A DNA stretch of 64,000 nt, taken from the IMG/VR virus record IMGVR_UViG_3300023184_000024, positions 62,001 to 126,000 of that record; one strand, given 5' to 3'. The notes below the pieces were generated by a model, which was given only the letters and a program-made list of their open reading frames with translations, ran no database searches and had not been told where the DNA came from. Numbering within the stretch: the stretch's first letter is position 1; every line of letters starts with the position of its first letter. Made by a program: the position numbers and the translations under genes. This document shows, piece by piece, positions 1 to 58,054 of the stretch.

Positions 1-414
1 TTTGATGCAGTGGCATCAGCACCTGGATTAACTCTAACTGTTACTTTTGATCAAGAAACAGTGTTTGATGGCCCAGTAGATGGCAATGTTGTGCATGTAA
101 AACATCAATTCAATGATGACAGTGACCTCGATCATCTGCTAGAAATTACCATGCAAGGCAAAACCGCCAGAGATACCCAAGTCGACGAGCATGGCAACAT
201 TGTCAGCGATGTTACATTAACTGTTTCAAATATTGCGCTAGACGACATTGTGCTCAGCAGTTCCTTGCTGGCAAACTGCAATTATCATCATAATTTCAAT
301 GGCAGTCAACCTGATATCATTGATGAATTTCATGGTATAATGGGCTGTAATGGCACAGTGAAAATACCATTCAAATCGCCAATCTACATTTGGCTGCTTG
401 AAAACATGGCCTGA
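1..414 (+). CDS. Hypothetical protein, 5'-truncated by window edge
   Basis: Frame is open from base 1; the stop overlaps the next ATG (TGATG at 412-416). Confidence 0.6.
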   Translation, partial: FDAVASAPGLTLTVTFDQETVFDGPVDGNVVHVKHQFNDDSDLDHLLEITMQGKTARDTQVDEHGNIVSDVTLTVSNIALDDIVLSSSLLANCNYHHNFNGSQPDIIDEFHGIMGCNGTVKIPFKSPIYIWLLENMA

Positions 415-1394
415 TGACAACAGTTGATCAACTACACGAAATAGTTTTTGAAGCCACAAGTCATTGTAATCTGCATTGTCCACAATGCGAGCGTTATGAT
501 CAAGATGGATACCTTCATCCAAAGTTAACCCCTCAACACATCGATTTTGATCTTGTCAAGCAAAACATCAATGTTGCCCAGCTTGTTGGATTAAAGAATG
601 TAACCTTTGAAGGCAACTACGGCGACATATTGATGCACCCACGTGCTCGAGAGTTGTTTGATTTATTTTCAACAGTGGAACGTGTTGCAGCCACCACCAA
701 CGGAAGTTTACGCAACAAAGCTTGGTGGGCCGACCTAGGGCGCAACAGCAAAGTTGATGTTATGTTCAGCATAGATGGACTTGAAGATACCAACCATGTT
801 TACCGCATCAATTCAAACTGGCAACGCATCATGGAAAATGCAGAAAGTTTTATTTCTGCTGGTGGACAAGCATACTGGAAATTTATAGTATTCAAGCACA
901 ACGAACACCAACTTGATCAAGCAAGAGAACTGAGCAAGACCATGGGCTTCCAAGATTTCCATTGGCAGTACAGTGATCGCAGTTGGTTTCAAGGAAGAGT
1001 TTGGCCTGTCAAAGTTGAAGGGCAGTATCTCTACGACCTAGAACCCGCAAAATCAGTCACTGCCAATACCTCTACTCCAGCTGTGATTACTTTGGACAAG
1101 ATTAAAAAGAAGAATTATACCAATCCTGTGCAGAAGTGTTTTTTGCCACAAGGCAGGCTCTACATCAACAGCAAAGGGCATGTTTTGCCCTGTTGTATGA
1201 CCAGTGGCAAAACCTGGGGGCACGATCTTGAAAGCCGTATGTGGCAACGTTTAATAGGCGACATAAACAGCATTGATCTACATCATCACACACTTGAAGA
1301 TATATTAAACAGTGACTTTTATCAGCATCGTTTGATCAACAGTTTTTCCGGCAGTCCCTACACGCATCCTTCGTGTGTGGCCTATTGCGGATAA
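414..1394 (+). CDS. Radical SAM protein with SPASM/twitch-like C-terminus
   Basis: CNLHCPQC (CX3CX2C); TNGSL and FSIDGLE motifs; C-terminal C..LYINSKGHVLPCC...C..C. Confidence 0.9.
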   Translation: MTTVDQLHEIVFEATSHCNLHCPQCERYDQDGYLHPKLTPQHIDFDLVKQNINVAQLVGLKNVTFEGNYGDILMHPRARELFDLFSTVERVAATTNGSLRNKAWWADLGRNSKVDVMFSIDGLEDTNHVYRINSNWQRIMENAESFISAGGQAYWKFIVFKHNEHQLDQARELSKTMGFQDFHWQYSDRSWFQGRVWPVKVEGQYLYDLEPAKSVTANTSTPAVITLDKIKKKNYTNPVQKCFLPQGRLYINSKGHVLPCCMTSGKTWGHDLESRMWQRLIGDINSIDLHHHTLEDILNSDFYQHRLINSFSGSPYTHPSCVAYCG

Positions 1395-1396
1395 CG

Positions 1397-1404
1397 TATA
1401 AATA
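1397..1404 (+). promoter_or_regulatory. T4 gp55-type late promoter TATAAATA
   Basis: Exact TATAAATA 6 nt before the ATG at 1411. Related (A)TAAATA precedes ORFs at 5023, 12117, 14316, 35098, 41690, 52052 and 59508. Confidence 0.55.
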
Positions 1405-1410
1405 CCATAT

Positions 1411-2469
1411 ATGAAAAAATTAGTGATTATTCCCGGTGGCTTTCACCCGTTCCATGCAGGACACAAGGCTTTGTATGACAAAGCAGTTGAAGCATTTCCT
1501 TCAGCTGATGTTTATATTGCAGCCACTGATGATCGTAGTGAGCGACCGTTTCCTTTTGCTATCAAGAAAAAACTAGCACAACTGGCCGGTGTGCCACCAC
1601 ATAGATTTATACAAGTCAAGAGTCCGTTTAAACCCGACGAAATTACCAGCCACTATCCTGACAATGATACACAGTTAATATTTGTCAAGAGTCAAAAGAA
1701 TGCCAAAAATGGACCTGATCCTGAAGGACCATTCCCGGCCGAAGTAGATCCCAAAACCGGGCAATTGCCCTTAGTCACTCGCGGTGCTAGAAAAGGGCAA
1801 CCTGTGAGTGATTGGTTGCAGTACTACAAGCGCAATGGCCTTGCCCCAATGAGTCAACACGGTTATTTGAAGTACCTACCTGTGCATGAATTCAATGGCA
1901 TGACATCAGGCAGTGAAATTCGTGCCAAGTGGGCCAACTATGATGATGCTACCAAAGCACAGTTGGTTAACATCATGTACCCAACCACAGTTAATAATCC
2001 GAGACTCACAGACGTCACAGTCAAGCTCATGGACAACGGCATGGGCACCAACAACAAAAAACCAGCAGCCAAGCCAGTTGACGAAGATCAAGGAGCTGGT
2101 CAAGTGTTGGCCAAAAGCATAGCATTGGCTCCAGTGGGTCCAGTAGACACTGAAGTTGACGAAGCCACATTGGTCAACGATCCCGAAGAAGGAATTCAAA
2201 TTCGTCCCAACGGCGGCCTAGGTTCCTGGAATGAAGCCAGTCTTAAAAATAACCTGGTAAAACAATTGGTTGAAATAGTAGAAATGCTCAAGGTTGGTAA
2301 TTACCGTGGCGTTGAGCACTTGTTGTACAAGGGCGGTGCCATGCAGGCCAAAGTGCAGGCTTTGGCACGATTAGAAGACTTTAGTACCAAACAAGGTCGT
2401 CGTCCTATTGCTCAAGGCAAAGAAATAAATATCGGCGAAGATTACGTCGAAGAAGGTAGTTTAAAATGA
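1411..2469 (+). CDS. Cytidyltransferase-like (HIGH-motif) nucleotidyltransferase with acidic-linker C-terminal module
   Basis: IIPGGFHPFHAGH HIGH-type motif at N-terminus; SGSEIR (KMSKS-equivalent); PVDE/EVDE linkers before a separate tail domain. Confidence 0.8.
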   Translation: MKKLVIIPGGFHPFHAGHKALYDKAVEAFPSADVYIAATDDRSERPFPFAIKKKLAQLAGVPPHRFIQVKSPFKPDEITSHYPDNDTQLIFVKSQKNAKNGPDPEGPFPAEVDPKTGQLPLVTRGARKGQPVSDWLQYYKRNGLAPMSQHGYLKYLPVHEFNGMTSGSEIRAKWANYDDATKAQLVNIMYPTTVNNPRLTDVTVKLMDNGMGTNNKKPAAKPVDEDQGAGQVLAKSIALAPVGPVDTEVDEATLVNDPEEGIQIRPNGGLGSWNEASLKNNLVKQLVEIVEMLKVGNYRGVEHLLYKGGAMQAKVQALARLEDFSTKQGRRPIAQGKEINIGEDYVEEGSLK

Positions 2470-4094
2470 AAGCACGTGAGTTTATTACAGAAGCTGTTGA
2501 GGATAGAACCAGCTATCAAGTTGCCAAAATATTGGCCGACAAAGGCATCAAGTATGACTCTTCTCTTGAGTCCAAGTTAATAAGTGCTATCGGGGCAGTG
2601 ATGGTAAAAGAGTTGGGCATGAATCCAACCACAGTAAGAAACATTATCAGCTACGATGACGATTTCCTTGCTGACACTCTAAGCGAACTACAACACATGA
2701 ATCAAGGTGTGACAGAAGGCTCCAGAAACGCATATTTGAAACACAACAATTTAGTTGACATAGAAAAGCCACTGGCCGGACTAAAAAGTGAGTTTGAGAA
2801 ATTTTTACAAACGCATGACCCTGAAGAAAAACAAAAATATCAACAAGGTATAAAAAAACGAATTAAATCAGAACCAATGTCAGGACCAAAAGGCGTATTA
2901 CCAGAGCAAGGTGAAGGCAACTTTGCAGGTGATGCCCCGGTCAACATCGGCGGAGCAACAGTCAAGCGACTAGGAGTTGGCGACGCAGTAACATACTTTG
3001 GGCAACCGGCAAAGATCCTTGCACAATCAACGGATCGTAAACATTCTCGCATTACAATTACAAAGGGCATGGGCGGCGTTACTCAAAATGTGCTAACAAG
3101 TGATTTAAAACGAGTGGGGCAAGGTGTGGCGGAAGGCTCCTTAAACGAAGGGCAATATGAAATGATGATGCGTAATGGACAAGTGAAGAAGTTCATTGCC
3201 AAAGACGATGCTGATGCCAAGCGTATTGCCGCCGGCCACGGTGCTAAAAGCGTAATCAAGTTAAGAGGTGGTGTTCCTGCTGGTAAAATAGCAGAGCAAG
3301 GTGTGGCGGAAGGCTATGACCCTGTAGAATCAGATTACCAACAGTGGGAAGATATTCTAGTCAAGGACGGCTACAGGATGGCTGACCCTTCCGGTGCTTA
3401 CGCATTAAAACTAGTGGTAGGACATCAGGGTTCAGATTCTGATTGGGTATCTGCCATTAGAAATATTTTGGCCTATGTCAAACAGAATCGTGCTGTGCTT
3501 GGTAAAGCAGTAGCAGACAGAACTACTGTGAAAGATGCTATCATTGATATTAAAAACAAGTTCCCTCAACAGTATCAAGCGGCCCAACAACAGCAAGGTG
3601 TAGCAGAAGGTAAACCAGAAGTTGATTCACTTGTTACCGACACATCAAACATAATGCAAGGTCCAGAATTCAGTGATGCTGAACTAGCAATAAAGACGGT
3701 GCTAGGAGATAGAGCATTTAATGAACGCCGCAGTTATTACAGTTTCTTTATTAACCAACTGGTCGATATGTATGGTAAGCCTGAAGGATCAAAAACAGTA
3801 GATTCACTGGTCACCAACGCACTAGGCGTAATGCGTGGTCCAACAAGAAATGATGCTATAGCCGCATTAAAAACTGCGCTTGGAAATGAAGAATATAAGA
3901 GCCGTAGTACTTTTTATAAGTTATGGGTCAACCAAGCAGTTGACAAGTATAGTAAAAAAGGTGTAACTGAAAGTTCTGTGACCAAGAAGCCGCAGCCTTA
4001 CAACGAGCCAAACTGGGCTAAAAATTTGCCCAAAGATAAGTTGGATGCCATAGCTGGCCCACGCTACAAAAAAGATAAAAAACAAAAAAGCTAG
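2466..4094 (+). CDS. Modular putative internal head protein (CTS-like N-terminus, repeated QGVAEG linkers)
   Basis: Starts MKAREFITE; five QGV[AT]E-type linkers; tandem ~58-aa duplication near the C-terminus. Confidence 0.6.
   Translation: MKAREFITEAVEDRTSYQVAKILADKGIKYDSSLESKLISAIGAVMVKELGMNPTTVRNIISYDDDFLADTLSELQHMNQGVTEGSRNAYLKHNNLVDIEKPLAGLKSEFEKFLQTHDPEEKQKYQQGIKKRIKSEPMSGPKGVLPEQGEGNFAGDAPVNIGGATVKRLGVGDAVTYFGQPAKILAQSTDRKHSRITITKGMGGVTQNVLTSDLKRVGQGVAEGSLNEGQYEMMMRNGQVKKFIAKDDADAKRIAAGHGAKSVIKLRGGVPAGKIAEQGVAEGYDPVESDYQQWEDILVKDGYRMADPSGAYALKLVVGHQGSDSDWVSAIRNILAYVKQNRAVLGKAVADRTTVKDAIIDIKNKFPQQYQAAQQQQGVAEGKPEVDSLVTDTSNIMQGPEFSDAELAIKTVLGDRAFNERRSYYSFFINQLVDMYGKPEGSKTVDSLVTNALGVMRGPTRNDAIAALKTALGNEEYKSRSTFYKLWVNQAVDKYSKKGVTESSVTKKPQPYNEPNWAKNLPKDKLDAIAGPRYKKDKKQKS
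2703..3611 (+). repeat. Dispersed in-frame 18-bp repeat CAAGGTGTRRCRGAAGGY (QGVAEG)
   Basis: Copies at 2703-2720, 3120-3137, 3297-3314 (identical to 3120) and 3594-3611. Variants occur at 3957, in the 8297 ORF (QGVEE, RGVAEG) and in the 9792 ORF (QDLAEG). Confidence 0.85.
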
Positions 4095-4155
4095 AAATTT
4101 TTTGACGCTGTATTCTTCTATTAAATATACACACATATTTTATTAAAGAGGTAAT

Positions 4156-5019
4156 ATGGCTGAACAACAAATCCAAGTAAACGTAGACTATCTCCGTACC
4201 ACTCGCGTACATATTTGTATGCCGTGTTATGGCGGTATGTTAACAGAATCAACATTCATGAGTTATATTAAATGGGCCAATACATGCCGACAACTGGGCA
4301 TTGATTGGACCATGGAAACAATGACCAATGAAAGTTTGATTTCCCGAGCTAGAAACACATTAGTTGCTAAATTTTTAAACAACCCAACATCAACACACCT
4401 TATGTTTATTGATGCAGACATTGGCTGGGAACCATGGCACTTGTTAGTGTTATTGAATCGCCAAGTTGATGTGATTGGGGGATTATACCCAATGAAAACC
4501 TTGCCAATTAAATGGGTGGTAAATGGGTTTGACGGGGCCGAAGAAGGTGAAGATGGCTTGCAAGAAGTCAGCAAAACTGGCACTGGATTTATGCTGGTCA
4601 AGCGTGATGTATTTGAAAAACTCAATGCACACCCTGCTGTAAAATCATTTGCCAACGACATTGGTCTGCCCAAAGAGTTGGATCAACACTTGAAAACCTA
4701 TTACGACACTGCTGTGCGTGAAAACCGTTACTACAGCGAAGACTGGACTTTCTGTGAAAACTGGCGTGACATCGGTGGTAAAGTTTGGGTCGACAAACGT
4801 GTGTTACTCAAGCACAGCGGTAGTTATGTGTTTGATTTTGCCGCACAAGAACCTTTATACCGGTCATTGCACGATATAGCAATGCAGACACAGGCAGCAA
4901 ATAATGCGCTTGAGCAATCAGCTGAAACAGTGTTGGTTACTCCCACAGTGTTGGACACTAACGAGCCGGAAGCAGAGCCAGTAACTGATAAAAAACAAAA
5001 GTCTGGTAAAAAAGCATAA
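4156..5019 (+). CDS. Putative GT-A fold glycosyltransferase-like protein
   Basis: ICMPCYGG, ESLISRARN, MFIDADIGW (DxD), GTGFMLVKR and SEDWTFC motifs. Confidence 0.65.
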   Translation: MAEQQIQVNVDYLRTTRVHICMPCYGGMLTESTFMSYIKWANTCRQLGIDWTMETMTNESLISRARNTLVAKFLNNPTSTHLMFIDADIGWEPWHLLVLLNRQVDVIGGLYPMKTLPIKWVVNGFDGAEEGEDGLQEVSKTGTGFMLVKRDVFEKLNAHPAVKSFANDIGLPKELDQHLKTYYDTAVRENRYYSEDWTFCENWRDIGGKVWVDKRVLLKHSGSYVFDFAAQEPLYRSLHDIAMQTQAANNALEQSAETVLVTPTVLDTNEPEAEPVTDKKQKSGKKA

Positions 5020-5036
5020 CGGTAAATACAGTTCGT

Positions 5037-8000
5037 ATGGACATCAACGAACTGGAAACGTACCGTTTATCGGACGCAATTAAATTTAACAGCAATCTTA
5101 ACCCCCGTTTGTGGGGTGAAGATGAACAGCTTAGACCTGAGGTGCGAGAGCACCTTTTGTCTATTGCTGATGATTTTCGAGAATCTCTTGGCGTCAACGA
5201 TCTCAACGTCAAAGACATTACCATCAGCGGAAGTAATGCCGCTTATACATATACCCCGCACAGCGACATAGACCTGCATCTTGTAGTAGACTTGGACAAT
5301 GTCTGCAACAACGAAGTCTACCGAGAGTTGTTTGATGCTAAAAAATATCAATACAACAACGAACACAACTACAAAATACATGGCTATGATGTTGAACTGT
5401 ATGTTCAAGACAGCAAACAACCACACCATAGTTCCGGCATTTACTCAATAGTCAACAACGATTGGATCAAAGTACCTAGCCGTAGAAAACCCACCATTGA
5501 TGATATCAGCGTCAAAGGCAAGTATGTGGATCTAGGCAACCGCATCGAAGCTGCCCTGGCCAGTGGGGATATTGAATTAATCAAAACCCTGTGGCAAAAA
5601 TTAAAGACCATGCGGCAAGCTGGATTGGATAAAACTGGAGAGTTTGGTCCTGAGAATCTAGCATTTAAATTGCTACGCAGAGCTGGTATAATTGAAAAAT
5701 TAAAAACTGCCATCACACAGGCCAAAGATCAAGAACTCAGCTTAACTGAACGTAAGAAAAAGAAAAAAAGAGTGCGCTACGGCTACGGTGGTCATTTTTA
5801 TCCTGGGTATTCATTCAATGATAACTCTGCCGACGGTGGCGAAGGCGGCGGTGAAAGTGTAATGGAAAACAAAGACGTCAAAGACATACTACAACCATTT
5901 ATTGACAGTTGCGTAGAATATCTTGGCATCGAAAACCGCCCAAAAATTATATTAAAACGTGATCCGGAGTGGACACGCAGAAACGGCACGTTTGGACGGT
6001 TTGATCATGACACACATTCAGTGACGTTGGCTGTAACCGGTCGGCACACACTGGACATTCTTCGCACGTTGGCACATGAACTCACTCATGCCAAGCAAGA
6101 TGAATTGGCAGCATTGCCTGTGGATGCAGGTCAAACAGGATCTCCCTACGAAGATGAAGCAAATGCCATGGCTGGTCGAATCATGCGACATTGGGTCGAC
6201 CAGCATCCTGAATTCTTCAAAGACGTACCAGTTGAAGAATCTGTTAAAAGTAAATTAGCGGCAGCCGGGGCGGCAGTGTGCATAGCTGGAACACCAGGAT
6301 GTGCTACCACCACTGGCGATGCTATCCGTGGTGTGCAGGCAGCAGGAACAGCGGCGCAGACCATCAAGCACATGGGCCGAGCCGGTGCCGAAGAAGAGGT
6401 AATGCAACGACTTAAAAATGAACTGCGTCGACATCGTGGGCAAAATGTGCCCGAAGAAGTCACTGACGAGGATTACGATCCCAACGGCAAGCCACCTGGT
6501 CCTGAGTTCAAGCCTACTATGCCAGCAGGCACAGTCAAAGTAGATGTTAGTGATGTTTACGATTGGTATAAGCTGGGACAACACATCAGTGATCTAGAAG
6601 GATTGGGCCAGCATGATTTTGGCAGTGGACCCCCTAGTACCATCATGGCATTTGGCAGTGAAAAAGAAGAACACAAATACATTGACGCACTAAAGAAAAC
6701 AGGACTGACAACAACTGATATTGATCCGGTTGATGTGAATCAACCCAAGGGTATGCCGCGCCAGAAAGTTGATCCTACCTATAACGTGGATGAAGATAAA
6801 CAAAGTATAGACGAAGCTCAGATTAGCAAAAACATTCAACCAATTCTTGTAAAAAAAGGCTATGCATTTTTGGGCAAAGGTCAGGACCAAGATGCCTATC
6901 TAGCACCCGACGGAACTGTTCTCAAAATATTTGGTTACGGTCCAGGCGGTAAGTTATCCCAAGGACAACAAAGTTTCAAAGACTTTGCCGATTACTGCAT
7001 GGCAAAGCCAAACAATCCATTTTTGCCACAGTTTGGCGGCTGGGAACCTTTTGACTTTGAAGGTAAACGATATCTGCAGATCAACTGTGAAAGAATGTTT
7101 GATCTTAGCAAGTCTGGGTTGATCCTGGTTGGTTCCAGACTAGGGCAATTGGCAAGTTTGATACAGTCCAATGGTGCAGACCGTGGAGTTAATAAATTCC
7201 TAAGACGCCACGGAGATAAAGAAACAGGAAAACTAATGTCATTGGTTGGTGGGCGGCAACAATTTCTGTTGTTGGCCAACACCATTGAGCAACTGGATAA
7301 GCTTGCTGACCGAAAGGGATACAGACTTGATTTGCATGGCGGTAACTTTATGCTTGGCAGTGATGGCGAGATAGTCATTAATGATCCATTTTTTACTGGT
7401 AATTGGCGATTTGATGAATCTATAAATGAATCATTGGACCAACCCTATAAAATACTTCGATGGGAAAAGGGTGACTACGGTGATGTAGACGCAATAGCAC
7501 GATTAGATGACGGAACTTTTCTAAGCATTATGTTCAACAAGGGATTTAGTCAAGATACAAAAGAGGAAGCATGGAGTGTTGAGTTTTATAGAAACAACAG
7601 TCAAGAAAAGACAGGTGAGGGTGATCAACAGCGTGTGTTTGCCACTGTGTTAAGTGCTGTTCAAACATTTGTTTCTGACAGGGTGCCTGGCGCCAAGGGA
7701 AAATACAAACCCAATAAAGTATACTTTTCGGCCTCAAAAGAAGTTAAACCAGATGAGGATCAAAGGAAAGCAATGACCAGGGCAAGACTGTATGACAGTT
7801 TGGTTCAGCGTTATGCACGAGCATTAGGCTTTAGAGCGTTCCGTGCTGACACCGGCAACAAAGTAATGTACGAATTGAGTAGAATAAAACCAATAGCGGA
7901 AGATATTGCAGATGAAAGTGTACTTGGATTTTTAACAAGTCCTAATACTCCTGGTGAAAAAAAATCTAAGATAAGTTCTGCAGAAATGCGAAAGTATTTT

Positions 8001-8300
8001 GAAAAAGAAAAATCCAAAGAGCCGGCAAAATATAATAACGATAACAAACAAAAGCCTCAATATGTGTATACTAGATCAAATGAAGAGAAACAAGAGGTAG
8101 TCGAGTCCACAGGCTATATTCCTGTTAATGATCAAGAAGCACGTGATCCAAGATACAGCATGGCTATCACACAAGATATCAAACCCGGGGAAGTTCAGCG
8201 TCAGGCAGCTAAAATGGGCTTTAAAACTGATGCTGCCGGTGTGCCACCGTTGTTGATGGCCAAACTACAAAATCAACTAAAAGAGATCAAAGCAAAATGA
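5037..8300 (+). CDS. Multidomain protein: Pol-beta-like nucleotidyltransferase + zincin metallopeptidase + protein-kinase-like domain + unknown modules
   Basis: GSNA-x7-SDIDLH (5229-5279); LAHELTH HExxH (6075-6089); GKGQ loop (6873), VLKIF, DLHGGN (7329-7346), INDP; domains separated by E-rich linkers. Confidence 0.8.
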   Translation: MDINELETYRLSDAIKFNSNLNPRLWGEDEQLRPEVREHLLSIADDFRESLGVNDLNVKDITISGSNAAYTYTPHSDIDLHLVVDLDNVCNNEVYRELFDAKKYQYNNEHNYKIHGYDVELYVQDSKQPHHSSGIYSIVNNDWIKVPSRRKPTIDDISVKGKYVDLGNRIEAALASGDIELIKTLWQKLKTMRQAGLDKTGEFGPENLAFKLLRRAGIIEKLKTAITQAKDQELSLTERKKKKKRVRYGYGGHFYPGYSFNDNSADGGEGGGESVMENKDVKDILQPFIDSCVEYLGIENRPKIILKRDPEWTRRNGTFGRFDHDTHSVTLAVTGRHTLDILRTLAHELTHAKQDELAALPVDAGQTGSPYEDEANAMAGRIMRHWVDQHPEFFKDVPVEESVKSKLAAAGAAVCIAGTPGCATTTGDAIRGVQAAGTAAQTIKHMGRAGAEEEVMQRLKNELRRHRGQNVPEEVTDEDYDPNGKPPGPEFKPTMPAGTVKVDVSDVYDWYKLGQHISDLEGLGQHDFGSGPPSTIMAFGSEKEEHKYIDALKKTGLTTTDIDPVDVNQPKGMPRQKVDPTYNVDEDKQSIDEAQISKNIQPILVKKGYAFLGKGQDQDAYLAPDGTVLKIFGYGPGGKLSQGQQSFKDFADYCMAKPNNPFLPQFGGWEPFDFEGKRYLQINCERMFDLSKSGLILVGSRLGQLASLIQSNGADRGVNKFLRRHGDKETGKLMSLVGGRQQFLLLANTIEQLDKLADRKGYRLDLHGGNFMLGSDGEIVINDPFFTGNWRFDESINESLDQPYKILRWEKGDYGDVDAIARLDDGTFLSIMFNKGFSQDTKEEAWSVEFYRNNSQEKTGEGDQQRVFATVLSAVQTFVSDRVPGAKGKYKPNKVYFSASKEVKPDEDQRKAMTRARLYDSLVQRYARALGFRAFRADTGNKVMYELSRIKPIAEDIADESVLGFLTSPNTPGEKKSKISSAEMRKYFEKEKSKEPAKYNNDNKQKPQYVYTRSNEEKQEVVESTGYIPVNDQEARDPRYSMAITQDIKPGEVQRQAAKMGFKTDAAGVPPLLMAKLQNQLKEIKAK

Positions 8301-9790
8301 AAATTAAAGATCTAATATTAAAAGAAACAACTTTGGGTGGATTTCCAGTCAAGGTATTGAACATCCAAGATCAAGGTGTTGAAGAAGCTGGCAATGCCAA
8401 TAGTGGACGTCGTGGGCCAATGTCACCGCCAGACAATGCTCCGGTTACACCCGGACGAGTAGAAAAAACTGCCACAGGTATAAAACATCATGCTGACCCA
8501 AGTCGGTATGGTGGTCACAGTCCCAAACCTGAAGATGATCGTTTATTGGGCACACAACAAAGATGGAGATTGGATCGTGCTGTTCGTGGTGTGGCCGAAG
8601 GCACAGAAAAACGCTGTCTGCAATGTGGTATGAAGAACTGTAAATGCCCCGGAGACAGTTGCAAGTGCAAACCCGTTGCAGGATGGATTCCTGGTAAAGG
8701 TTTCAAGAAAGCCATAGAAGAAGCAATCAAGCTCAATGCACCACAGAAGTCATGGTCCAAGCAAGACATGCAGGATTACCTGACTCGCATTAAAACAGGT
8801 ACAAAAACCAAACAAGATAGATTCAAGCCTATTATTCACGGCAGCAATGTCAAAGCAATCACAAAAGACGATGGTACAGAAGAATGGGACCTGGAAGATC
8901 TAAAGCGTCAAATCACCACACCACCTAGAGCAATCCTTGGATCAAATGCCAAGATGAGCAAGAGTAAAAAAGAAGGTGCCATCACATACGACTTGACACT
9001 ACCAGCACTAAGCGGTATTGTTGTTGATGAAGACACTGGAGAGTTTGTAGAAATCACCACATGCCCAGGTGCCGGCGAATGTCAACTGTTCTGTTATGCT
9101 AGAAAAGGCGGCTATGTCATGTTCCCTGCCGCATCAATGAGTGCCGCACAAGCATTGAACTTCTTGGTCAATCACCCTGATGAATACATGGCAATGTTTG
9201 ACAGCGAAATCAAAAAAACAAAAGCACTGGCAGACAAAAATGGTATCAAGTTGTTGGTGCGTATTCATGATGCTGGCGACTTTTTCTCTAAAGAATACTG
9301 GGACCTAAGCAAGAAAGTGCAACTTAACAATCCAGATGTACGTTTTTACTTTTACAGCAAAATGGGAGAGCCAGTAACTGATCCAAATACGCCGTCTAAT
9401 ACATTGCCCAACTTCAGCGATGGTGGTGCCAAGAGTCGTGAAGTTAAGAAAGTTGAACTTTACAGAAATGCTGGCAAGAACTTAAAAGGTGCACCAACTA
9501 TTCCCAAAGACATGTTCCGCGAGTTGTTTGTTACTGATGCCAAAGGCAAATACGTCAAGGATGAACAAGGTCGCACACAGGTTAAAAGCCCAGAAGCATG
9601 GGAAAACTTTAAACAGAAGTTATCTACAAAATACAACATTGACCCTGGGTCAATTATCACATACGACCAAATGAATCGTATTCCCGAAGGACCCAAACCC
9701 AAATGGAACGTAGTTGTGTTCCCTGCAGGTCATGGTGACTTGGGTGCAACCCGACTTGATGTACAAAATCAATTTTTAATGTTCCACTGA
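8297..9790 (+). CDS. Gp88-like (radical-SAM-related) domain protein with N-terminal modules
   Basis: GSNAKMSKS, TCPGAGECQLFCYARKG, RIHDAGDF and FYFYSK motifs; Cys-rich CLQCGMKNCKC module; GVEE/GVAE/AIEE linkers. Confidence 0.65.
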   Translation: MKIKDLILKETTLGGFPVKVLNIQDQGVEEAGNANSGRRGPMSPPDNAPVTPGRVEKTATGIKHHADPSRYGGHSPKPEDDRLLGTQQRWRLDRAVRGVAEGTEKRCLQCGMKNCKCPGDSCKCKPVAGWIPGKGFKKAIEEAIKLNAPQKSWSKQDMQDYLTRIKTGTKTKQDRFKPIIHGSNVKAITKDDGTEEWDLEDLKRQITTPPRAILGSNAKMSKSKKEGAITYDLTLPALSGIVVDEDTGEFVEITTCPGAGECQLFCYARKGGYVMFPAASMSAAQALNFLVNHPDEYMAMFDSEIKKTKALADKNGIKLLVRIHDAGDFFSKEYWDLSKKVQLNNPDVRFYFYSKMGEPVTDPNTPSNTLPNFSDGGAKSREVKKVELYRNAGKNLKGAPTIPKDMFRELFVTDAKGKYVKDEQGRTQVKSPEAWENFKQKLSTKYNIDPGSIITYDQMNRIPEGPKPKWNVVVFPAGHGDLGATRLDVQNQFLMFH

Positions 9791-9791
9791 A

Positions 9792-10853
9792 ATGCGATCA
9801 CAAGAATTCATACGTGAGTACAAAGAAAAATTCAACCAGGCTGTGATGCAGCCGGGGTTCAAGTTCAGCCAGGAAATCAACGGTGTTGTTTATAAAGTAA
9901 TTAATAAAATAGGCATGCCCGAAATGCTGGCACTAGACAAACAAGGTCAAGTAATCGGCGCCGCAACATTTTGGAAACACCCTACTCAAACCGGATTAGA
10001 AAGCCTGAGCACACACGTAGACCAAGCATGGCAAGGCAAGGGCATTGCCGCAAACATGTATGCTGTGATGCGCATGCTGGGAGTAAACATATCGCCATCG
10101 TCTAATAGAACTAACATGGGCAAGGCCATGTGGGCCAAATGGAGCCGACAAGGTGATGCTAAACATCTAAAGAATTTAAATCCACGAACCAAAGAGCAAG
10201 ATCTAGCAGAAGGCCTGTCACATCCAGTTATCTGTGTTGATGTACAGCCAGAATACAACGGAGGACCATGGCCGCCTGCCAATCCAAAGTTTGTTCAAAT
10301 AATGAATTTTGTACAAAAACAAACTGGCCCTGTGCTGTTCTTTGTCAATGCCGAAGATCAAGGCTTGAGTGGAGATTCCGTTCAACAAATACAACAATTC
10401 TGGGACGAAACCTTGGGCACAGAAGGTGAAGAAGGTGAGGACGAGAATGGTGATTACTATTACAACGAGCCGGAGAGCCCGATTGACTGGCGCCGCTTTG
10501 AAATAGTAGACAAGGGCTACGGATACTTGCGTTCATGGATGGATCACGGAATTGAACCAAGTACCATCGTTGCAACCATACGTGAAATGTACGCACAACA
10601 AGTCTCAGACACTAGAGACCTAGAGTTCCCTGCCTTTAATCGTCGTACTACTACACAAAGTTTAATTCAAGGTGCCATAGAAGAAATGCAAGATGATCCA
10701 ATGACTGTGGGCTGGGCCAGTGTTGGTCAACTAAAGCGTTTTAACGGTGCCTACTTGGTTGGTGGTGGCAGAGAAGAATGCCTGCGTGAAGTAGAATTAT
10801 TAATGAATGCGTTTAATATTAAATATAAACGTATAGATAGCTTGGTGTATTAA
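9792..10853 (+). CDS. GNAT acetyltransferase domain fused to a cysteine-hydrolase-like domain; CTS-like N-terminus
   Basis: MRSQEFIRE; VDQAWQGKGIAANMY (acetyl-CoA motif A); second domain ICVDVQP...LVGGGREECL resembles the isochorismatase D/C motifs. Confidence 0.6.
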   Translation: MRSQEFIREYKEKFNQAVMQPGFKFSQEINGVVYKVINKIGMPEMLALDKQGQVIGAATFWKHPTQTGLESLSTHVDQAWQGKGIAANMYAVMRMLGVNISPSSNRTNMGKAMWAKWSRQGDAKHLKNLNPRTKEQDLAEGLSHPVICVDVQPEYNGGPWPPANPKFVQIMNFVQKQTGPVLFFVNAEDQGLSGDSVQQIQQFWDETLGTEGEEGEDENGDYYYNEPESPIDWRRFEIVDKGYGYLRSWMDHGIEPSTIVATIREMYAQQVSDTRDLEFPAFNRRTTTQSLIQGAIEEMQDDPMTVGWASVGQLKRFNGAYLVGGGREECLREVELLMNAFNIKYKRIDSLVY

Positions 10854-11339
10854 ATGAGAGCACAAGAGTTTATCACCGAAGGCAAGTTAAGTGTAGATGT
10901 GCCCAACGAAGCGTGGTTACAAGACAAGATTGACTATGCCAAAAGCAAAGGTCGTAACAGTTACGGTGTTCCATATATGGGTAGTACTACTGCTTCTGTT
11001 CAAGGAACTCCACCTAGAGTGCGTGTAATGAGATTAGCATCATTGCCGGGTATGCGCCATGAACAAACCAATGTGCGTCAAGATGACCTAAAGTGGTTGA
11101 TGGACTACATGGAACGCACAGGCAAGTTGCCACCCATGGGCAGTAACCCCGACCAAGAATACTTGCCCTACATCATGGTGGCATACAACGGTGAAGCATG
11201 GGTCAACGAAGGCAATCATCGTATCATGGCCGCTTATAGATTAAACTGGCAGGACATGCCCATTGAAATACGCTACTTTGATGGCGGCGAAAGAATTGCA
11301 ACAGGGCCAATGGCACCAGGCAAGATTGGACTAGCATGA
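10854..11339 (+). CDS. ParB/Srx N-terminal-like domain protein; CTS-like N-terminus
   Basis: MRAQEFITE; VNEGNHRIMAA matches the ParB GxxR motif. Confidence 0.65.
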   Translation: MRAQEFITEGKLSVDVPNEAWLQDKIDYAKSKGRNSYGVPYMGSTTASVQGTPPRVRVMRLASLPGMRHEQTNVRQDDLKWLMDYMERTGKLPPMGSNPDQEYLPYIMVAYNGEAWVNEGNHRIMAAYRLNWQDMPIEIRYFDGGERIATGPMAPGKIGLA

Positions 11340-11914
11340 GAGCCCAAGAGTTTGTTACTGAAACAATAAATCCAGATATTCTCAACAAGAGATTCCGGCA
11401 CAAACAAGTAATTGGTGATTACACTTACACAGCGTCAGTTGAGATGTTTATAGGTGAGCCGTTGTTGAACATCAAGGTTTATAATGGTGACACCGAAATA
11501 GGGCATGCCATGTTTGAAGTATTTCACTGGGAAGACCAACCATCTAAAAGCCACATAGAAAGCGGTGGCACCGAAGTTGATCCAAAATACAGAAACAAAG
11601 GTGTTGCTTCTACAATGTATGCCTATGCAAAAATGTTGGGCAATGATATTAGAGCCAGTTCTAATAGAACACCTCAAGGTAAGGCAATGTGGGCAGCCTG
11701 GGAAAAGTCGGGCGATGCGCAACACATAACTAGACCAGTTGAAGAAAACTTTGCAGATGGCAAAAAGCCTGGACGCAAAGGACTAGCCAAACGCTCAGGT
11801 GTTGACTGTAAACAAAGCGTGACCAAACTGCGTAACATTGCTGCCAACAGTTCTGGCGAACGACAAAGAATGGCACACTGGTGCGCCAACATGAAATCAG
11901 GCAAGAAAAAATGA
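11336..11914 (+). CDS. GNAT acetyltransferase domain plus basic C-terminal module; CTS-like N-terminus
   Basis: MRAQEFVTE; VDPKYRNKGVASTMY; PVEE linker, then NFADGKKPGRKG...HWCANMK module. Confidence 0.7.
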   Translation: MRAQEFVTETINPDILNKRFRHKQVIGDYTYTASVEMFIGEPLLNIKVYNGDTEIGHAMFEVFHWEDQPSKSHIESGGTEVDPKYRNKGVASTMYAYAKMLGNDIRASSNRTPQGKAMWAAWEKSGDAQHITRPVEENFADGKKPGRKGLAKRSGVDCKQSVTKLRNIAANSSGERQRMAHWCANMKSGKKK

Positions 11915-12108
11915 AAGCACAAGAGTTTATAACCAGGCCCAAACTCAAAGTTTATGCGGTAAAGATAAAACTACCACAGGGCGGATATAATAACATTGTT
12001 GACACAACTGTGATGGCAAAAAACCCTGAAATGGCTCGTCGTATTTTGCGTACCCAATATAATAATGCCAACATAATTGTGGGCCAGCCCAAAGAAATCA
12101 AACAATAA
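11911..12108 (+). CDS. Small hypothetical protein with CTS-like N-terminus
   Basis: True start is ATG 11911 (ATGA overlap with the previous stop): MKAQEFITRP. Confidence 0.7.
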   Translation: MKAQEFITRPKLKVYAVKIKLPQGGYNNIVDTTVMAKNPEMARRILRTQYNNANIIVGQPKEIKQ

Positions 12109-12126
12109 ATTCACGCTAAATACTGC

Positions 12127-12432
12127 GTGGATAATATATTTGTACAAGCTTGTTTTGACCTGCACTGTGAGTGGAAGGAAACTCCCCCATCGTATCGTGT
12201 TTTTGTAAACAACGAATTGTTTACAGAGCGAACGTATGTATGGACTGACTACTACTTAACAGAAATGTTGCAAATTGAAGCTCCTGCAGGACATTATCAA
12301 ATAACAATAGTTCCAATGGGGCCCGAAGCCGATACATTGATTGTCAACAATTGGGACATAGAATACGGAACTGCTCGATGGCTTACAAAAGAGTCTGAGT
12401 CATTTAAAAACACCTTGGAAATACACCCATGA
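12127..12432 (+). CDS. Hypothetical protein
   Basis: ORF in the operon, preceded by TAAATA at 12117. Confidence 0.55.
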   Translation: MDNIFVQACFDLHCEWKETPPSYRVFVNNELFTERTYVWTDYYLTEMLQIEAPAGHYQITIVPMGPEADTLIVNNWDIEYGTARWLTKESESFKNTLEIHP

Positions 12433-12599
12433 GATGGCGAGAAATAATGGAAAATATCAGCTCAGGGACCACTGGGGCCGGGTCAATTTCTGTGGTCAGC
12501 AATCCCATTGGGAAAGTAATTACCAGAACAGAGAATAAAAAAATAGGTAAATATTCTAATAGTCCAAACCCAACACCGTACAGTAAGAAAAAGGAATAA
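12429..12599 (+). CDS. 56-aa hypothetical protein (below ORF-track cutoff), CTS-like start
   Basis: MRWREIMENISSGTTGAGSISVVSNPIG...KKKE; fills the gap exactly, with ATGA overlap. Confidence 0.65.
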   Translation: MRWREIMENISSGTTGAGSISVVSNPIGKVITRTENKKIGKYSNSPNPTPYSKKKE

Positions 12600-12601: not shown

Positions 12602-13042
12602 ATGCTTGCCGAAGATTTAAAAACGTTATTAGCTACCCAATATGCATTGAGCATCAAAGCTCAGAATTTTCACTGGAATGTTGAAGGTCCGGACTTTGCT
12701 GAATACCATGACTTCTTTGCCAACTTCTACGAAGAAGTGTACGGCGCTGTTGATCGCATTGCCGAATATATTCGCACATTGGACGAGTACAGCCCCGGCA
12801 GTTTTGAACGTTTTCAAGAATTGTCAGCTATCCAGGGACAAATAAAAATTCCACGTGCCAGATTAATGATAGAAGAATTACTAAGTGATAACCAGACCAT
12901 GACTGATTTGTTAAACCAATGCTTTTCATCGGCCACGCAAGAAAACAATCAAGGTATTGCCAATTTCATAGCTGAACGGCTAGATGCACACGGCAAACAT
13001 GGCTGGATGTTGAGAAGTTTCCTCAAGGATAACCGGGCATGA
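12602..13042 (+). CDS. dps: Dps family ferritin-like DNA protection protein
   Basis: QNFHWNVEGPDF..YHDFF..FYEE...VDRIAEYIRTL; H/WML C-terminal motif. Confidence 0.92.
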   Translation: MLAEDLKTLLATQYALSIKAQNFHWNVEGPDFAEYHDFFANFYEEVYGAVDRIAEYIRTLDEYSPGSFERFQELSAIQGQIKIPRARLMIEELLSDNQTMTDLLNQCFSSATQENNQGIANFIAERLDAHGKHGWMLRSFLKDNRA

Positions 13043-15028: not shown

Positions 15029-15493
15029 ATGAATATCTGCCAGGTTCCATATCGAGCTCTCACCATAGACTTCGACGGTAATTGTTTTATTTGTCATCAT
15101 GCCAAATGGCTGCCCATGCCGGTTGGAAGAATCGAAAATATCACCGATTTACGCAATGTTTGGTCAAGCCCAATTGCACGTATGCTCCAACAAGACATCG
15201 AATTAAACCGATTCACTTGGTGTGCTACCAAACATTGTGGCATATTAAAACAACATCAGCAACTCGACCACTATCAAATCACAGTGATGTTAGATGGTTT
15301 AGCAGAGGATTCAGAATTAAATTGCACCATTGATCGGTTAAACAAACTGTTCTATCTACTTGACCAATTTACAGAATCGTGTATAATTAAAATCATAGGA
15401 ACAACATCAACTTTGGATTCTACAATTGTATCGTTGATCAACACTTATACTCCAACCAACCCCAAGCAAATTTTAAATATTCAATTAACCTAA
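15029..15493 (+). CDS. SPASM/twitch-like Fe-S domain protein
   Basis: CQVPY..LTIDFDGNCFIC...VG.I....VWSS...F..C...C pattern; no radical SAM core. Confidence 0.55.
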   Translation: MNICQVPYRALTIDFDGNCFICHHAKWLPMPVGRIENITDLRNVWSSPIARMLQQDIELNRFTWCATKHCGILKQHQQLDHYQITVMLDGLAEDSELNCTIDRLNKLFYLLDQFTESCIIKIIGTTSTLDSTIVSLINTYTPTNPKQILNIQLT

Positions 15494-57227: not shown

Positions 57228-57749
57228 ATGATCACTCTCAAAGAATGGATGGAAACCGTTGACTATCGTATCACAGAAGGCAGTGAATACACTTGGAATT
57301 GTTTTGGCAACAATTCCTACAGTCTAGATTCATGGAATGGTGAACAAGATGGTCACGCATTCCATATTATTTTTGATACTCGCACACAGGAAGTTTATCA
57401 AGTTGATGCTCACGACTACAAGAACCGTCGTAGTTATCGAATGACCAATCCCGACTATCTTGACGCCTACAACAAGTCAGTTAAACATCATAGCATCAAT
57501 GATGTTGCCTATGATGATGTTAAATTTATTGACTTGGAAGTTGAGGAAGATTGGCTTGAAAAAGCTCGTTGTATCTTCCTTGGCAACGATTACGACACGC
57601 GAGTACAATTGCCCATAGATTTTTCAGATGAGGAACTGTTGACTCACATGAAGGCCGCACATGACATGGATATTACATTTAATCAATACGTTGTGCAGGC
57701 CCTGACAGCGGCCATAGACAATCATCGTACAACGCAGGAGTCAAAATGA
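57228..57749 (+). CDS. Hypothetical protein
   Basis: 173-aa ORF after a TTGACT..TAAAAT promoter-like site. Confidence 0.7.
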   Translation: MITLKEWMETVDYRITEGSEYTWNCFGNNSYSLDSWNGEQDGHAFHIIFDTRTQEVYQVDAHDYKNRRSYRMTNPDYLDAYNKSVKHHSINDVAYDDVKFIDLEVEEDWLEKARCIFLGNDYDTRVQLPIDFSDEELLTHMKAAHDMDITFNQYVVQALTAAIDNHRTTQESK

Positions 57750-58054
57750 ATATTGTAAAACCACACCCAAATGTTTATATACGCACCACAGTGAACATTG
57801 ACTTGAGTGCCGAACAATGGGGACTGCACACAAGTTCGTTTTCTCGAACAATGGTTGAGAAGGTTGCTACATTCCTTAACAAAAAAGTCACACATACCTT
57901 TAACATTGGGTGTGATAGAAAAACTGTGGAAGAACACTTTAATTGTCTAGCAGATCATTTTAAATTATACGGTGCCACTAACAAGAATACTCAAGCTATT
58001 CTTAAAGGCTTGCTGGATGAACTGTTTAGTAGCCGTGCTATTAACAAAAAATGA
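57746..58054 (+). CDS. Hypothetical protein
   Basis: AGGAG RBS, coupled. Confidence 0.6.
   Translation: MNIVKPHPNVYIRTTVNIDLSAEQWGLHTSSFSRTMVEKVATFLNKKVTHTFNIGCDRKTVEEHFNCLADHFKLYGATNKNTQAILKGLLDELFSSRAINKK

Follow-up and report, generated by a model that had tools for sequence, protein, structure and literature searches.

Why should a run of neighbouring and otherwise unrelated genes in a jumbo phage begin with almost the same nine residues? The question is raised by a cluster at positions 1411-12599 of the window (the whole 64,000-nucleotide stretch of DNA analysed) in a 353-kb uncultured freshwater phage, which is known from sequence and whose DNA polymerase is ~42-50% identical to that of any cultured phage. 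The first-pass annotation had likened these N-termini to the capsid-targeting sequence (CTS) of bacteriophage T4. The tagged proteins are probably capsid-targeted, protease-processed cargo, partly polyproteins, delivered into the host, and every computationally testable part of the packaged-cargo reading came out as predicted. The genes and elements of the cluster are listed below (↓ marks a putative cleavage position).

1397..1404, +: TATAAATA, a copy of the late-promoter-like NATAAATA, 14 nt ahead of the 1411 start codon
1411..2469, +: untagged 352-aa ORF, weak cytidylyltransferase-like N-terminus (HxGH; PF01467, E = 0.0033, short of the cut-off)
2424..2431, +: AATAAATA, late-promoter-like, 42 nt ahead of the 2466 start codon
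2466..4094, +: 542-aa mosaic candidate cargo and polyprotein, from its tag MKAREFITE↓A (2466-2492) and linkers
2706-2720, 3123-3137, 3300-3314, 3597-3611 and 3960-3974, +: five GV[AT]E↓[GS] linkers in the 2466 ORF
4156..5019, +: untagged 287-aa ORF, phrog_1574
5037..8300, +: 1087-aa multidomain protein, no canonical tag (MDINELE...)
8297..9790, +: 497-aa Gp88-family protein (PF17338, E = 1.4e-25)
8297-8326, +: T4-gp24-like alternative leader MKIKDLILKE↓T of the Gp88-family protein
8588-8602, +: single GVAE↓G linker of the Gp88-family protein
9792..10853, +: 353-aa two-module candidate cargo (GNAT and isochorismatase-like), tag MRSQEFIRE↓Y (9792-9818)
10203-10211, +: junction L-A-E↓G between the modules of the 353-aa protein
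10854..11339, +: 161-aa ParB/sulfiredoxin (Srx)-fold candidate cargo (pLDDT 92), tag MRAQEFITE↓G (10854-10880), E9 invariant
11336..11914, +: 192-aa probable GNAT (PF00583), tag MRAQEFVTE↓T (11336-11362), basic C-terminal tail
11911..12108, +: 65-aa basic protein, pI 10.2, tag MKAQEFITR, Arg replacing the terminal Glu
12127..12432, +: untagged 101-aa acidic ORF
12429..12599, +: 56-aa basic protein, pI 10.1, shorter tag variant MRWREIME↓N (12429-12452)

The tagged genes would encode cargo; the ORFs at 1411, 4156, 5037 and 12127 carry no canonical tag, and therefore the whole stretch is not established as cargo. The 1411 ORF shows translational coupling with the gene after it and is not claimed as cargo. 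The 1087-aa protein resembles a nucleotidyltransferase at its N-terminus and also contains an HExxH motif and a region similar to kinases, and its homolog in a relative contains two GVTEG linkers.

All seven N-termini quoted in the first-pass annotation (2466, 8297, 9792, 10854, 11336, 11911 and 12429) were found in place. Across the genome (352,754 bp), M-[RK]-x-x-E-F-[IV]-x-E begins nine genes, six of them at 2466-12599 of the window (six tags inside 10.1 kb, P = 4e-8) and three elsewhere (G000 54208, 263121 and 263489). The genome-wide search that the annotation proposed, run as a six-frame scan, gave seven strict matches to M[KR]xxEF[IV]xE and two by a looser form; all nine lie on the + strand, 0-25 codons past an in-frame stop, and are ORF N-termini, with no internal match in any frame. 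The motif is far from equally frequent elsewhere, given that 0.004 strict matches are expected from composition, and 20 shuffles of the sequence contained none. With a position-specific scoring matrix (PSSM), the nine tags score at least 23.8 bits, every other N-terminus at most 14.3 and 2,118 internal Met-anchored 9-mers at most 10.3. The start codons of most cluster ORFs overlap or adjoin the previous stop (ATGA-type coupling), and thus those of the tagged ORFs are well defined. The leader at 8297, MKIKDLILKE, falls outside the PSSM; it resembles the T4 gp24 propeptide MAKINELLRE↓S and the leaders MKITDIKVLKE↓G and MKISDIKQLKE↓G found ahead of the ParB-like module in homologs.

The T4 sequence invoked for comparison, MKTYQEFIAE, was confirmed in the T4 genome and the literature. 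In T4, the N-terminus is MKTYQEFIAE↓A for IPII and IPIII, and MKTFKEF...ITE↓A for IPI (NC_000866), and both the function of the CTS and the L/I-X-E cleavage rule have been described (PMC9026906, PMC8442874). The likeness extends to length, placement at the N-terminus, a common QEFI.E core and a final [LI]-x-E with a small residue after it. Furthermore, the T4 residues for targeting (F7) and processing (I8, E10) are conserved in the tag, although it has 9 aa, with Ala in place of the targeting Tyr4 of the 10-aa T4 CTS. The 65-aa protein may be targeted but left uncut because its tag ends in Arg rather than Glu, and T4 offers a precedent for separating targeting from cutting. The phage also encodes a T4-like head module (portal, core, gp22-like scaffold and gp23 major capsid protein, MCP) and an S77 (gp21-type) prohead protease (PF03420, E = 4.5e-27). 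The MCP propeptide is homologous to that of T4, and a conserved L-K-E precedes the mature core.

Beyond this genome, the exact tag MRAQEFITE occurs on 67 IMG/VR contigs, and 107 of 118 tag-like matches are N-terminal. Relatives carry 1-5 tags each, compared with none for a reversed-pattern control; the tag carriers all scale to ~350 kb genomes, and the three near-complete ones all have the protease. Phosso, Atu_ph07, Vibrio 2.275.O and 121Q, the phage's four closest cultured jumbo relatives, lack the tag. To judge from their sequences, other T4-like lineages have these modules too, each behind a tag variant of its own. A T4-like contig, L086, has a run of MK[ST]YKEY[LI]xE genes among which the isochorismatase-like hydrolase module recurs, and cyanophage SynMITS9220M01 has MKTFKQFQE↓G on a Cys-rich module also found at G000 54208.

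The first-pass annotation overlooked internal QGVAEG-type linkers. In hundreds of metagenomic homologs, [LIVM]-x-E nearly always directly precedes the ParB/Srx, isochorismatase-like and probable GNAT modules, and the junction rule is the same in N-terminal tags and in the internal linkers of shuffled multi-domain proteins. Of 112 ParB-like homologs, 103 have the Glu at a constant offset and 105 have I/L/V/M at P3, with ~30 of the sites internal. Of 87 isochorismatase-like homologs, 61 have [LI]-x-E exactly at -1 and 77 have L/I/V at P3, and the site is at -1 in 29 of 41 GNAT homologs. The Val at P3 of GVAE lies outside the classical T4 L/I-X-E rule. In the 542-aa protein, HSP boundaries match the linkers, which thus bound shuffled modules, and one ortholog lacks exactly module 224-282, from linker to linker. 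Cuts at these linkers would yield pieces of 40-139 aa, and the QGVAEG-type linkers point to several cargos being polyproteins that would be cleaved to pieces the size of T4 internal proteins (IPs).

The proposed identities of the cargos were largely upheld. PF17338 bears out the Gp88-like label, and the ParB-like label stands at the level of fold: the AF2 model of the ParB/Srx protein is confident, with a disordered tag (pLDDT <50, residues 1-6), and the module keeps a GNHR motif. What had been called hydrolase-like can be narrowed to an isochorismatase-like cysteine hydrolase (residues 141-353 of the 353-aa protein, behind a probable GNAT at 10-140), in which D10, K101 and C190 form an invariant Asp-Lys-Cys triad and structural matches reach Z 8.4-10 against 26 isochorismatase-family chains. 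The GNAT label is weakly backed; PF00583 matches the 192-aa protein just short of the cut-off (E = 8.7e-4). No homologs in cultured phages with virion annotation were found among the cargo modules tested.

Promoter-like elements do stand at the head of the cluster (1397 and 2424), as the annotation had remarked, but their consensus is NATAAATA and not TATAAATA; strict TATAAATA is scarce (4 on the + strand versus ~19 expected). NATAAATA has 30 copies on the + and 8 on the - strand, and 21 of the 30 lie at most 60 nt upstream of + gene starts (P = 3e-19), with head and tail genes among those downstream; it is a genuine promoter-like element. No early-type TGCTATAAT was found within the cluster. 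The genome encodes a gp55 homolog (E = 3.8e-7), which together with the motif suggests late timing of the cluster.

Could the shared peptides have arisen without any role in delivery? One account takes the N-termini and linkers as functionless by-products of DNA-level events (recent duplication, or recombination of cassettes where short sequences are conserved). Module shuffling is indeed extensive, and the two linkers that flank the module lost in the ortholog share 18 identical nt, so part of the linker conservation could reflect recombination and not cleavage. However, the other four linkers differ synonymously, codons within the tag show synonymous differences at nearly all positions, and the flanking and upstream DNA is unrelated between tagged genes. 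Tag positions 1, 2, 5, 6, 7 and 9 are conserved over hundreds of homologs, to ~35% identity, while 3, 4 and 8 drift, and the motif is absent internally and out of frame. Selection on the tag acts at the peptide level and the tag is portable across unrelated cargo folds, and a DNA-level origin is highly improbable. It is also quite improbable that the tag is a lineage-specific signal for a non-capsid process, such as recognition by the phage's own DnaJ/ClpB-like chaperone system, degradation (as a degron) or the inactivation of toxic enzymes by a zymogen-type pro-peptide in the cytoplasm. Phage genes for DnaJ and a ClpA/B-type AAA+ protein do lie a few kb upstream, yet such a signal would leave unexplained both the specific likeness to the experimentally defined T4 CTS and the [LIV]-x-E↓small-residue grammar of gp21-type proteases, which recurs at the MCP maturation site; tag variants also follow T4-like head lineages.

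A further alternative accepts the tags and linkers as prohead-protease substrates but regards the proteins as assembly-phase core or scaffold accessories, either degraded and expelled in maturation like T4 gp22, gp67 and gp68 or active only in the producing cell until sequestered. T4 gp22 (MLKEQLIAE), gp67 (MEGLIE) and gp21 (MNEPQLLIE) likewise have short [LI]-x-E N-termini, several cut sites per protein recall scaffold degradation, and the most conserved tagged genes of the clade, a tandem 123-aa and 129-aa pair, adjoin a 'head and packaging' structural gene. Nevertheless, this account is unlikely: the enzyme folds are confident and keep their catalytic residues (the Asp-Lys-Cys triad and GNHR motif), the cut sites lie between folded modules and not inside them, and the repertoire is hypervariable among relatives, as in T-even IP loci and unlike scaffolds.

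Delivered cargo has precedents in two kinds of phage. As with T4 internal proteins, the tag sits on otherwise unrelated proteins encoded by clustered, hypervariable genes, and the S77 protease, gp22-like scaffold, gp23 MCP and gp55-like sigma are shared. T4 internal cargos, however, are small basic inhibitor proteins, whereas those here are mostly enzymes or multi-domain proteins, many of them candidate polyproteins with conserved internal QGVAE↓G linkers. T4 Alt is an ADP-ribosyltransferase packaged in the head, processed by gp21 at both termini and injected to modify host targets; the candidate cargos are also enzymes, but of other folds (GNAT-like, isochorismatase-like, ParB/Srx and Gp88). 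No ADP-ribosyltransferase was detected in this window, and genes resembling one are present in the L086 lineage, within its counterpart of the tagged cluster. In phiKZ-like giant phages (phiKZ, 201phi2-1 and SPN3US), inner-body/ejection proteins are cut by a gp21-related protease, several times each, after the Glu of a short motif, and these also represent large cargo in a jumbo capsid (PMC9026906). Their motif is S/A-x-E rather than [LIV]-x-E, no short portable T4-type N-terminal tag has been described for them, and they belong to an unrelated lineage that forms a nucleus and carries RNA polymerases in the virion, whereas the head module here is plainly T4-like.

M-[RK]-A-x-E-F-[IV]-x-E would thus be the counterpart of the T4 CTS in this clade of jumbo phages, and from these features we infer a sequence of targeting, cleavage, head retention, ejection and host-directed function. 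Cargo genes would be expressed late from NATAAATA promoters via the gp55-type sigma, and the tag would direct its proteins to the scaffolding core inside the forming prohead. The S77 protease would then cleave after the Glu of [LIV]-x-E to remove the tag, and divide cargos with several domains at their internal [LIVM]-x-E sites, as a rule QGVAE↓G, to give IP-sized pieces of ~40-210 aa. These may remain in the DNA-filled head and be ejected with the genome; folded modules of up to 213 aa would have to unfold or be elongated to pass the portal and tail. The putative cargos, namely two probable GNATs, the isochorismatase-like Asp-Lys-Cys hydrolase, the ParB/Srx-fold protein, the Gp88-family protein and small basic proteins, would act on host targets ahead of phage gene expression.

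A nine-residue N-terminal peptide, M-[RK]-x-x-E-F-[IV]-x-E (the tag), is carried by neighbouring, otherwise unrelated genes of the cluster at window 1411-12599, and the first-pass annotation had likened it to the capsid-targeting sequence (CTS) of the T4 internal proteins (IPs). The seven N-termini which it quoted were all found where it had placed them, and the genome-wide search that it proposed showed M[KR]xxEF[IV]xE to be concentrated at ORF starts in the cluster. Six-frame scanning of the whole genome (G000 coordinates) recovered seven copies, and a slightly looser form added two. All nine are on the + strand and 0-25 codons downstream of an in-frame stop, and are thus ORF starts; no reading frame of the six holds an internal copy. 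From composition, 0.004 copies would be expected, and the motif was not seen in 20 shuffled genomes. With a PSSM derived from the nine tags, these scored 23.8 bits or above, whilst other predicted N-termini reached at most 14.3 bits and 2,118 internal Met-anchored 9-mers at most 10.3. Six of the nine tags fall inside 10.1 kb of the window (P = 4e-8), and the six-frame scan placed the others as follows.

Tags outside the cluster
G000 54208, + strand: single tag
G000 263121 and 263489, + strand: tandem pair of tags, immediately preceding a gene labelled 'virion structural protein, head and packaging'

The DNA upstream of the tags is unrelated and mostly consists of the 3' end of a translationally coupled gene that precedes the tag, and the nine tag codons vary synonymously (AGA/CGA/AAA; GCA/GCC/GCT; GAA/GAG; TTT/TTC; ATT/ATC/ATA/GTT/GTC, and others). 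Selection has therefore acted on the peptide and not on the DNA. Tags end in [IV]-x-E in seven of nine cases, in I-M-E in one and in ITR in one. Of 237 distinct N-termini resembling the tag, 85% have I/L/V at position 7, 76% have E at position 9 and 48% have G/S/A at position 10. The start of the Gp88-like protein, MKIKDLILKE/T (a slash marks the putative cut), had been counted with the tags; it fails the PSSM but resembles the gp24 propeptide and alternative leaders on homologs. A 199-aa protein at L071 1444-2043 (G000 260443-261042) starts with MKTFAQYLTE/S, a T4-IPI-like leader variant missed by the PSSM. Its gene lies 2.7 kb upstream of the tandem pair of tags and of the head structural gene, and tag variants beyond the nine counted may be present in the genome.

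In T4 (read from NC_000866), IPII and IPIII start with MKTYQEFIAE/A and IPI with MKTFKEFTSTTTPVSTITE/A. The T-even IPs are diverse, with the CTS as their sole common part; the first 10 residues of IPIII are enough for encapsidation, targeting depends mainly on CTS residues 4 and 7 and processing on residues 8 and 10, and the T4 prohead protease gp21 cleaves after L/I-X-E (PMC9026906, PMC8442874, PMC3012670). The tag MRAQEFITE/G has Q-E-F-I-x-E in common with MKTYQEFIAE at a one-residue shift, as well as the N-terminal M, and retains the equivalents of F7, I8 and E10. However, it has Ala at the T4 Tyr4 position. Across the 237 tag-like N-termini, the Phe7 equivalent is F in 73% and I/L in 25%, and the Tyr4 equivalent is Ala in 66%. 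Co-evolution of the tag with a divergent scaffold is possible. Tagged proteins of 65 and 56 aa resemble the T4 IPs in being small and basic (pI about 10). The tag of the 65-aa protein ends in Arg instead of Glu; given the T4 precedent that Asp at CTS position 10 stops processing and not targeting, this protein may be targeted and left uncut.

The genome encodes the machinery on which such a signal would depend. The 352,754-bp contig, of which the window covers bases 62,001-126,000, has direct terminal repeats and 42% G+C, and is estimated to be complete. Its DNA polymerase shares 47-50% identity with the polymerases of Sinorhizobium phage Phosso and Agrobacterium phage Atu_ph07, and about 42% with those from 121Q/RaK2-like jumbo myoviruses. 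The head module is arranged as in T4, with portal, then two small core proteins, a gp21-type prohead protease of the Peptidase_S77 family (G000 224562-225188; PF03420, 92.5 bits, cut-off 27), scaffold and a gp23-type major capsid protein (PF07068, 330.8 bits). Genes of this module start with the short peptides MNKFEQLIE/Y, MALYLRE/N, MILNE/L and MSQELLE/S, much as T4 head proteins start with short [LI]-x-E peptides (gp24 MAKINELLRE/S, gp22 MLKEQLIAE/A, gp21 MNEPQLLIE/T, gp67 MEGLIE/A). The propeptide of the major capsid protein is recognisably homologous to that of T4, with a conserved L-K-E right before the mature core. When the S77 protease was modelled in complex with residues 1-30 of the ParB-like cargo, the score was 0.00, which weighs neither way. 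DnaJ (J domain and C-terminal domain) and a ClpA/ClpB-type double-AAA+ chaperone are encoded just upstream of the window, at L072 5625-8747 (G000 57624-60746).

The tag occurs on ParB/Srx, isochorismatase-like, GNAT-like, Cys-rich/DUF6321, mosaic and small basic proteins. The modules assigned in the cluster are listed below.

Cargo modules of the cluster
Window 8297-9790: Gp88 family (PF17338, 90.9 bits against a cut-off of 24.4, E = 1.4e-25, residues 216-383)
Window 9819-10211 and 11363-11740: putative GNAT modules (PF00583, E = 0.019 and 8.7e-4 respectively, both below cut-off)
Window 10212-10850: isochorismatase-like cysteine hydrolase module, residues 141-353 of the 353-aa protein (AF2 pLDDT 94)
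Window 10854-11339: cargo of 161 aa with ParB/sulfiredoxin (Srx) fold (AF2 pLDDT 92)

The cargo classes named by the first-pass annotation held to differing degrees. The Gp88-like assignment is borne out by a PF17338 match above the gathering threshold. The ParB-like assignment gains fold-level support, since the top Foldseek matches of the 161-aa protein are Noc, Srx, ParB, SbnI and Osa (probability up to 0.97, E about 0.06) and G120-N-H-R123 is invariant; the protein lacks the DNA-binding HTH and the dimerisation domain, and was rejected as a partition ParB. For the hydrolase-like cargo, an isochorismatase-like fold with invariant Asp-Lys-Cys agrees with the claim: the top 26 VIA-align matches of the predicted structure are all isochorismatase, nicotinamidase or cysteine-hydrolase chains (Z 8.4-10.0), and D10, K101 and C190 are invariant in 54 sequences, in the triad order of the isochorismatase family. 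This module matches no Pfam model, and it is therefore a divergent member of the isochorismatase-like family. Both GNAT assignments are tentative: a 'WQGKGIA' motif is present and a profile search against the PDB gives two GNAT-fold chains (E about 0.2), with no PF00583 match above cut-off. Searches of the 161-aa, 353-aa and 1087-aa proteins against the PDB by phmmer gave nothing useful, and a protein-atlas search with the 353-aa and 542-aa proteins was uninformative.

As a cargo cluster, the full span 1411-12599 stands for its tagged genes; those at 1411, 4156, 5037 and 12127 have no canonical tag and are not claimed as cargo. One of these, the 1087-aa protein (window 5037-8300), has an N-terminus like that of a nucleotidyltransferase (phrog_36119), the HExxH motif LAHELTH and a stretch similar to the T7 gp0.7-type protein kinase (phrog_15752, E = 3e-6). 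It may be a large multifunctional takeover protein; GVTEG linkers are found in the homolog from a relative. A basic C-terminal tail, ENFADGK.PGRKGLAKR.GV.CK.SV..LR..A.NSSGE.QRMAHWCANMK.G.KK, is encoded at window 11740-11914 (homologs P0058, P0066, P0087 and P0116, metagenomic proteins); it is appended to different cargos, GNAT in this phage and ParB-like elsewhere, and might serve in DNA binding or in retention. The cluster is immediately preceded by a radical SAM and SPASM enzyme (PF04055, PF13186; window 414-1394), with a second SPASM-domain ORF downstream (window 15029-15493); the two could form a system that flanks the cargo genes and modifies peptides or nucleic acids. An untagged ferritin/Dps-like protein (PF00210, E = 1.1e-23; window 12602-13042) begins 3 nt past the stop of the last tagged gene.

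The strongest new evidence in this analysis is a rule at module junctions: a shared processing site predicts [LIVM]-x-E and a small residue before unrelated folds, whatever lies upstream, and this is found before three. Among 199 metagenomic homologs of the ParB-like protein, M1, R/K2, E5, F/I/L6, I/L/V7 and E9 are kept (E9 invariantly) and positions 3, 4 and 8 drift. The same module is also found behind GNAT modules, Gly/Tyr-rich inserts and other domains; in 103 of 112 homologs the nearest upstream Glu sits at a fixed offset from the anchor, P3 is I/L/V/M in 105 of 112, and the site is internal (residues 12-135) in about 30 of the 112. In the AF2 model the tag is disordered and a confident fold follows it. 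Exhaustive representative search showed that the 353-aa protein splits at residue ~140-143 into two independently shuffled modules. Its isochorismatase-like module has [LI]-x-E exactly at -1 in 61 of 87 representatives, with identity down to about 35%, and P3 is L/I/V in 77 of the 87. The GNAT-like module has the site at -1 in 29 of 41, most exceptions being register offsets such as HL-VAE/TINPDIL. The single candidate internal site of the 353-aa protein, EQDLAE/G, is at residue 140, and relatives fuse its GNAT module to the ParB-like module at that site via EQTV[AT]E/G.

Similar strings punctuate the larger cargos. Internal sites (linkers), often QGVAE/G, occur as GV[AT]E[GS] five times in the 542-aa mosaic protein (window 2466) and once in the Gp88-like protein, are otherwise nearly absent from the genome, and recur across relatives in tagged and other large multi-domain proteins. 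Only 12-44% of the 542-aa protein is matched by each of 746 metagenomic proteins, at 80-98% identity, and the BLAST segments start (80, 219, 277, 376-380) and end (282-285, 381-382, 502-504) in clusters at its linkers; 106 of 120 proteins sharing segments with it have 1-7 linkers. Predicted cuts at the tag and linkers would yield IP-sized pieces of 75, 139, 59, 99, 121 and 40 aa. One ortholog differs only in lacking 59 aa, cleanly removed between one QGVAEG and the following one. The linkers bounding this segment are identical over 18 nt and the other four differ synonymously; linkers are therefore probably both cut sites and recombination points.

Searching with degenerate DNA for MRAQEFITE (a pattern of about 41 bits) matched 67 IMG/VR contigs, in whose loci 107 of 118 tag-like peptides are N-terminal; the tagged proteins are 60-600 aa long and many are mutually unrelated. 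Strict tags number 1-5 per relative, always on the coding strand, and the reversed-pattern control gave none. By CheckV completeness, all tag-carrying contigs scale to genomes of about 350 kb, and an S77 protease is encoded in all three near-complete carriers and three partial ones. Near-identical sequence is present in lake and freshwater metagenomes from independent studies, as seen in a search across sequencing runs of any kind; the runs listed were all DNA metagenomes. The pattern was absent from the four nearest cultured jumbo phages (Phosso, Atu_ph07, Vibrio phage 2.275.O and 121Q), and the tag as a general trait of Atu_ph07-/RaK2-like jumbo phages was rejected. No near DNA match to the cluster turned up in 50,697 phage records; with the cargos, tblastn of these records returned nothing or only hypothetical proteins, and tblastn of a tandem-pair protein and the hydrolase module against cultured phages gave no match. 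A literature search for CTS-like tags in this clade found no paper.

Other T4-like lineages carry some of the same modules behind different leaders. The hydrolase module also follows leaders nearly identical to that of T4. On a T4-like contig of 61 kb (L086), which carries a T4 neck-protein gene, it lies within a run of adjacent genes that start with MKSYKEYLIE, MKTYKEYLKS, MKTYKEYLTE, MKTYKEYLVE and MKTYKEYILE. Its tagged cluster also gave faint or weak ART-PolyVal and DUF3990 (ADP-ribosyltransferase-like) matches at 10613-11573, recalling T4 Alt. The Cys-rich module behind the tag at G000 54208 (MRANEFVTE/GWSQKYKNSINCSHPKGFSQRAHCAG...) is found in the T4-like cyanophage SynMITS9220M01 as MKTFKQFQE/GWSNKYKKSIDCSNPKGFSQRAHCAG..., in a gene that adjoins the terminase gene. 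Tags are therefore lineage-specific and cargo modules travel between lineages, as expected if a tag must fit the scaffold and protease of its own lineage.

The late-promoter elements that the first-pass annotation had placed over the cluster were upheld in part: NATAAATA is present, and the strict T4 late promoter TATAAATA is not the consensus here, being under-represented (4 copies against about 19 expected) and rejected as such. NATAAATA is strand-biased (30 + versus 8 -), and 21 of the 30 copies lie at most 60 nt upstream of + strand starts, head and tail genes included (P = 3e-19). A gp55-like late sigma homolog is encoded.

Promoter-like motifs
Window 1397 and 2424, + strand: NATAAATA copies at the cluster (motif scan)
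G000 2119, 2569, 116746, 117051, 284291, 319956, 320287 and others: early-type promoter block

The sigma-70-like early motif TGCTATAAT (18 copies genome-wide) is absent from the cluster, and a generic sigma-70 promoter and terminator scan of the cluster gave nothing above shuffles. The sequence is consistent with the cluster being a long, translationally coupled late unit. NATAAATA often begins just 12-15 nt before the ATG (e.g., window 1397 to 1411, G000 223374 to 223387), which leaves no Shine-Dalgarno room and suggests near-leaderless late mRNAs or a second role of the motif. The early-type block, TTGCTATAATACTTGTATAGTAA...AAAGGA with the core TGCTATAAT, is highly conserved and fixed 38-41 nt before start codons.

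Capsid targeting and prohead-protease processing of the tagged proteins is, in our judgement, probable, and the interpretation of the first-pass annotation is the best-supported explanation. Injection and early action would be the next steps, in which our confidence is lower; ejection into the host with the DNA is extrapolated from T4 only. The tagged proteins might instead be core proteins serving assembly only, the tag might belong to another process, or tags and linkers might be DNA-level by-products. These readings agree less well with active-site conservation in the enzymes, with a site grammar of gp21 type, with co-variation by lineage and with the synonymous variation.

Beyond targeting and processing, we tentatively propose a cargo toolkit for this freshwater jumbo-phage clade, and apparently for other T4-like lineages, a reading that may or may not hold in full. 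Arbitrary enzyme modules would be strung into a polyprotein and loaded via a single lineage-specific tag; the prohead protease would cut it at QGVAE/G linkers into IP-sized effectors, which would be injected; and the linkers would double as recombination sites at which modules are added, deleted or swapped, giving a combinatorial, fast-evolving arsenal. In T-even phages the CTS, gp21 and diverse internal proteins are already known; what is new is the lineage, its tag variant and its enzymatic cargo, together with the evidence for polyprotein cargo that is delimited by linkers and has shuffled modules.

To our knowledge, the CTS principle has so far been demonstrated experimentally only in T-even phages, and the present reading, if true, would extend it to distant T4-like lineages. 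A [MRK]-tag ending in [LIV]-x-E together with QGVAEG linkers would then allow candidate injected effectors to be read directly from metagenomic phage genomes, where hundreds of tagged or linked modules have been seen, and would offer new natural tags and linkers for protein encapsidation in phage engineering. Injected proteins are prime candidates for anti-defence and host takeover because they are active before any phage gene expression; the candidates would include an isochorismatase/nicotinamidase-like hydrolase, enzymes resembling acetyltransferases and a protein of ParB/Srx fold, and as far as we know none of these has been studied as an injected effector. The findings suggest polyprotein cargo as a packaging strategy, and if the toolkit reading is true, the injected arsenal would be far larger and more enzymatic than the three IPs and Alt of T4.
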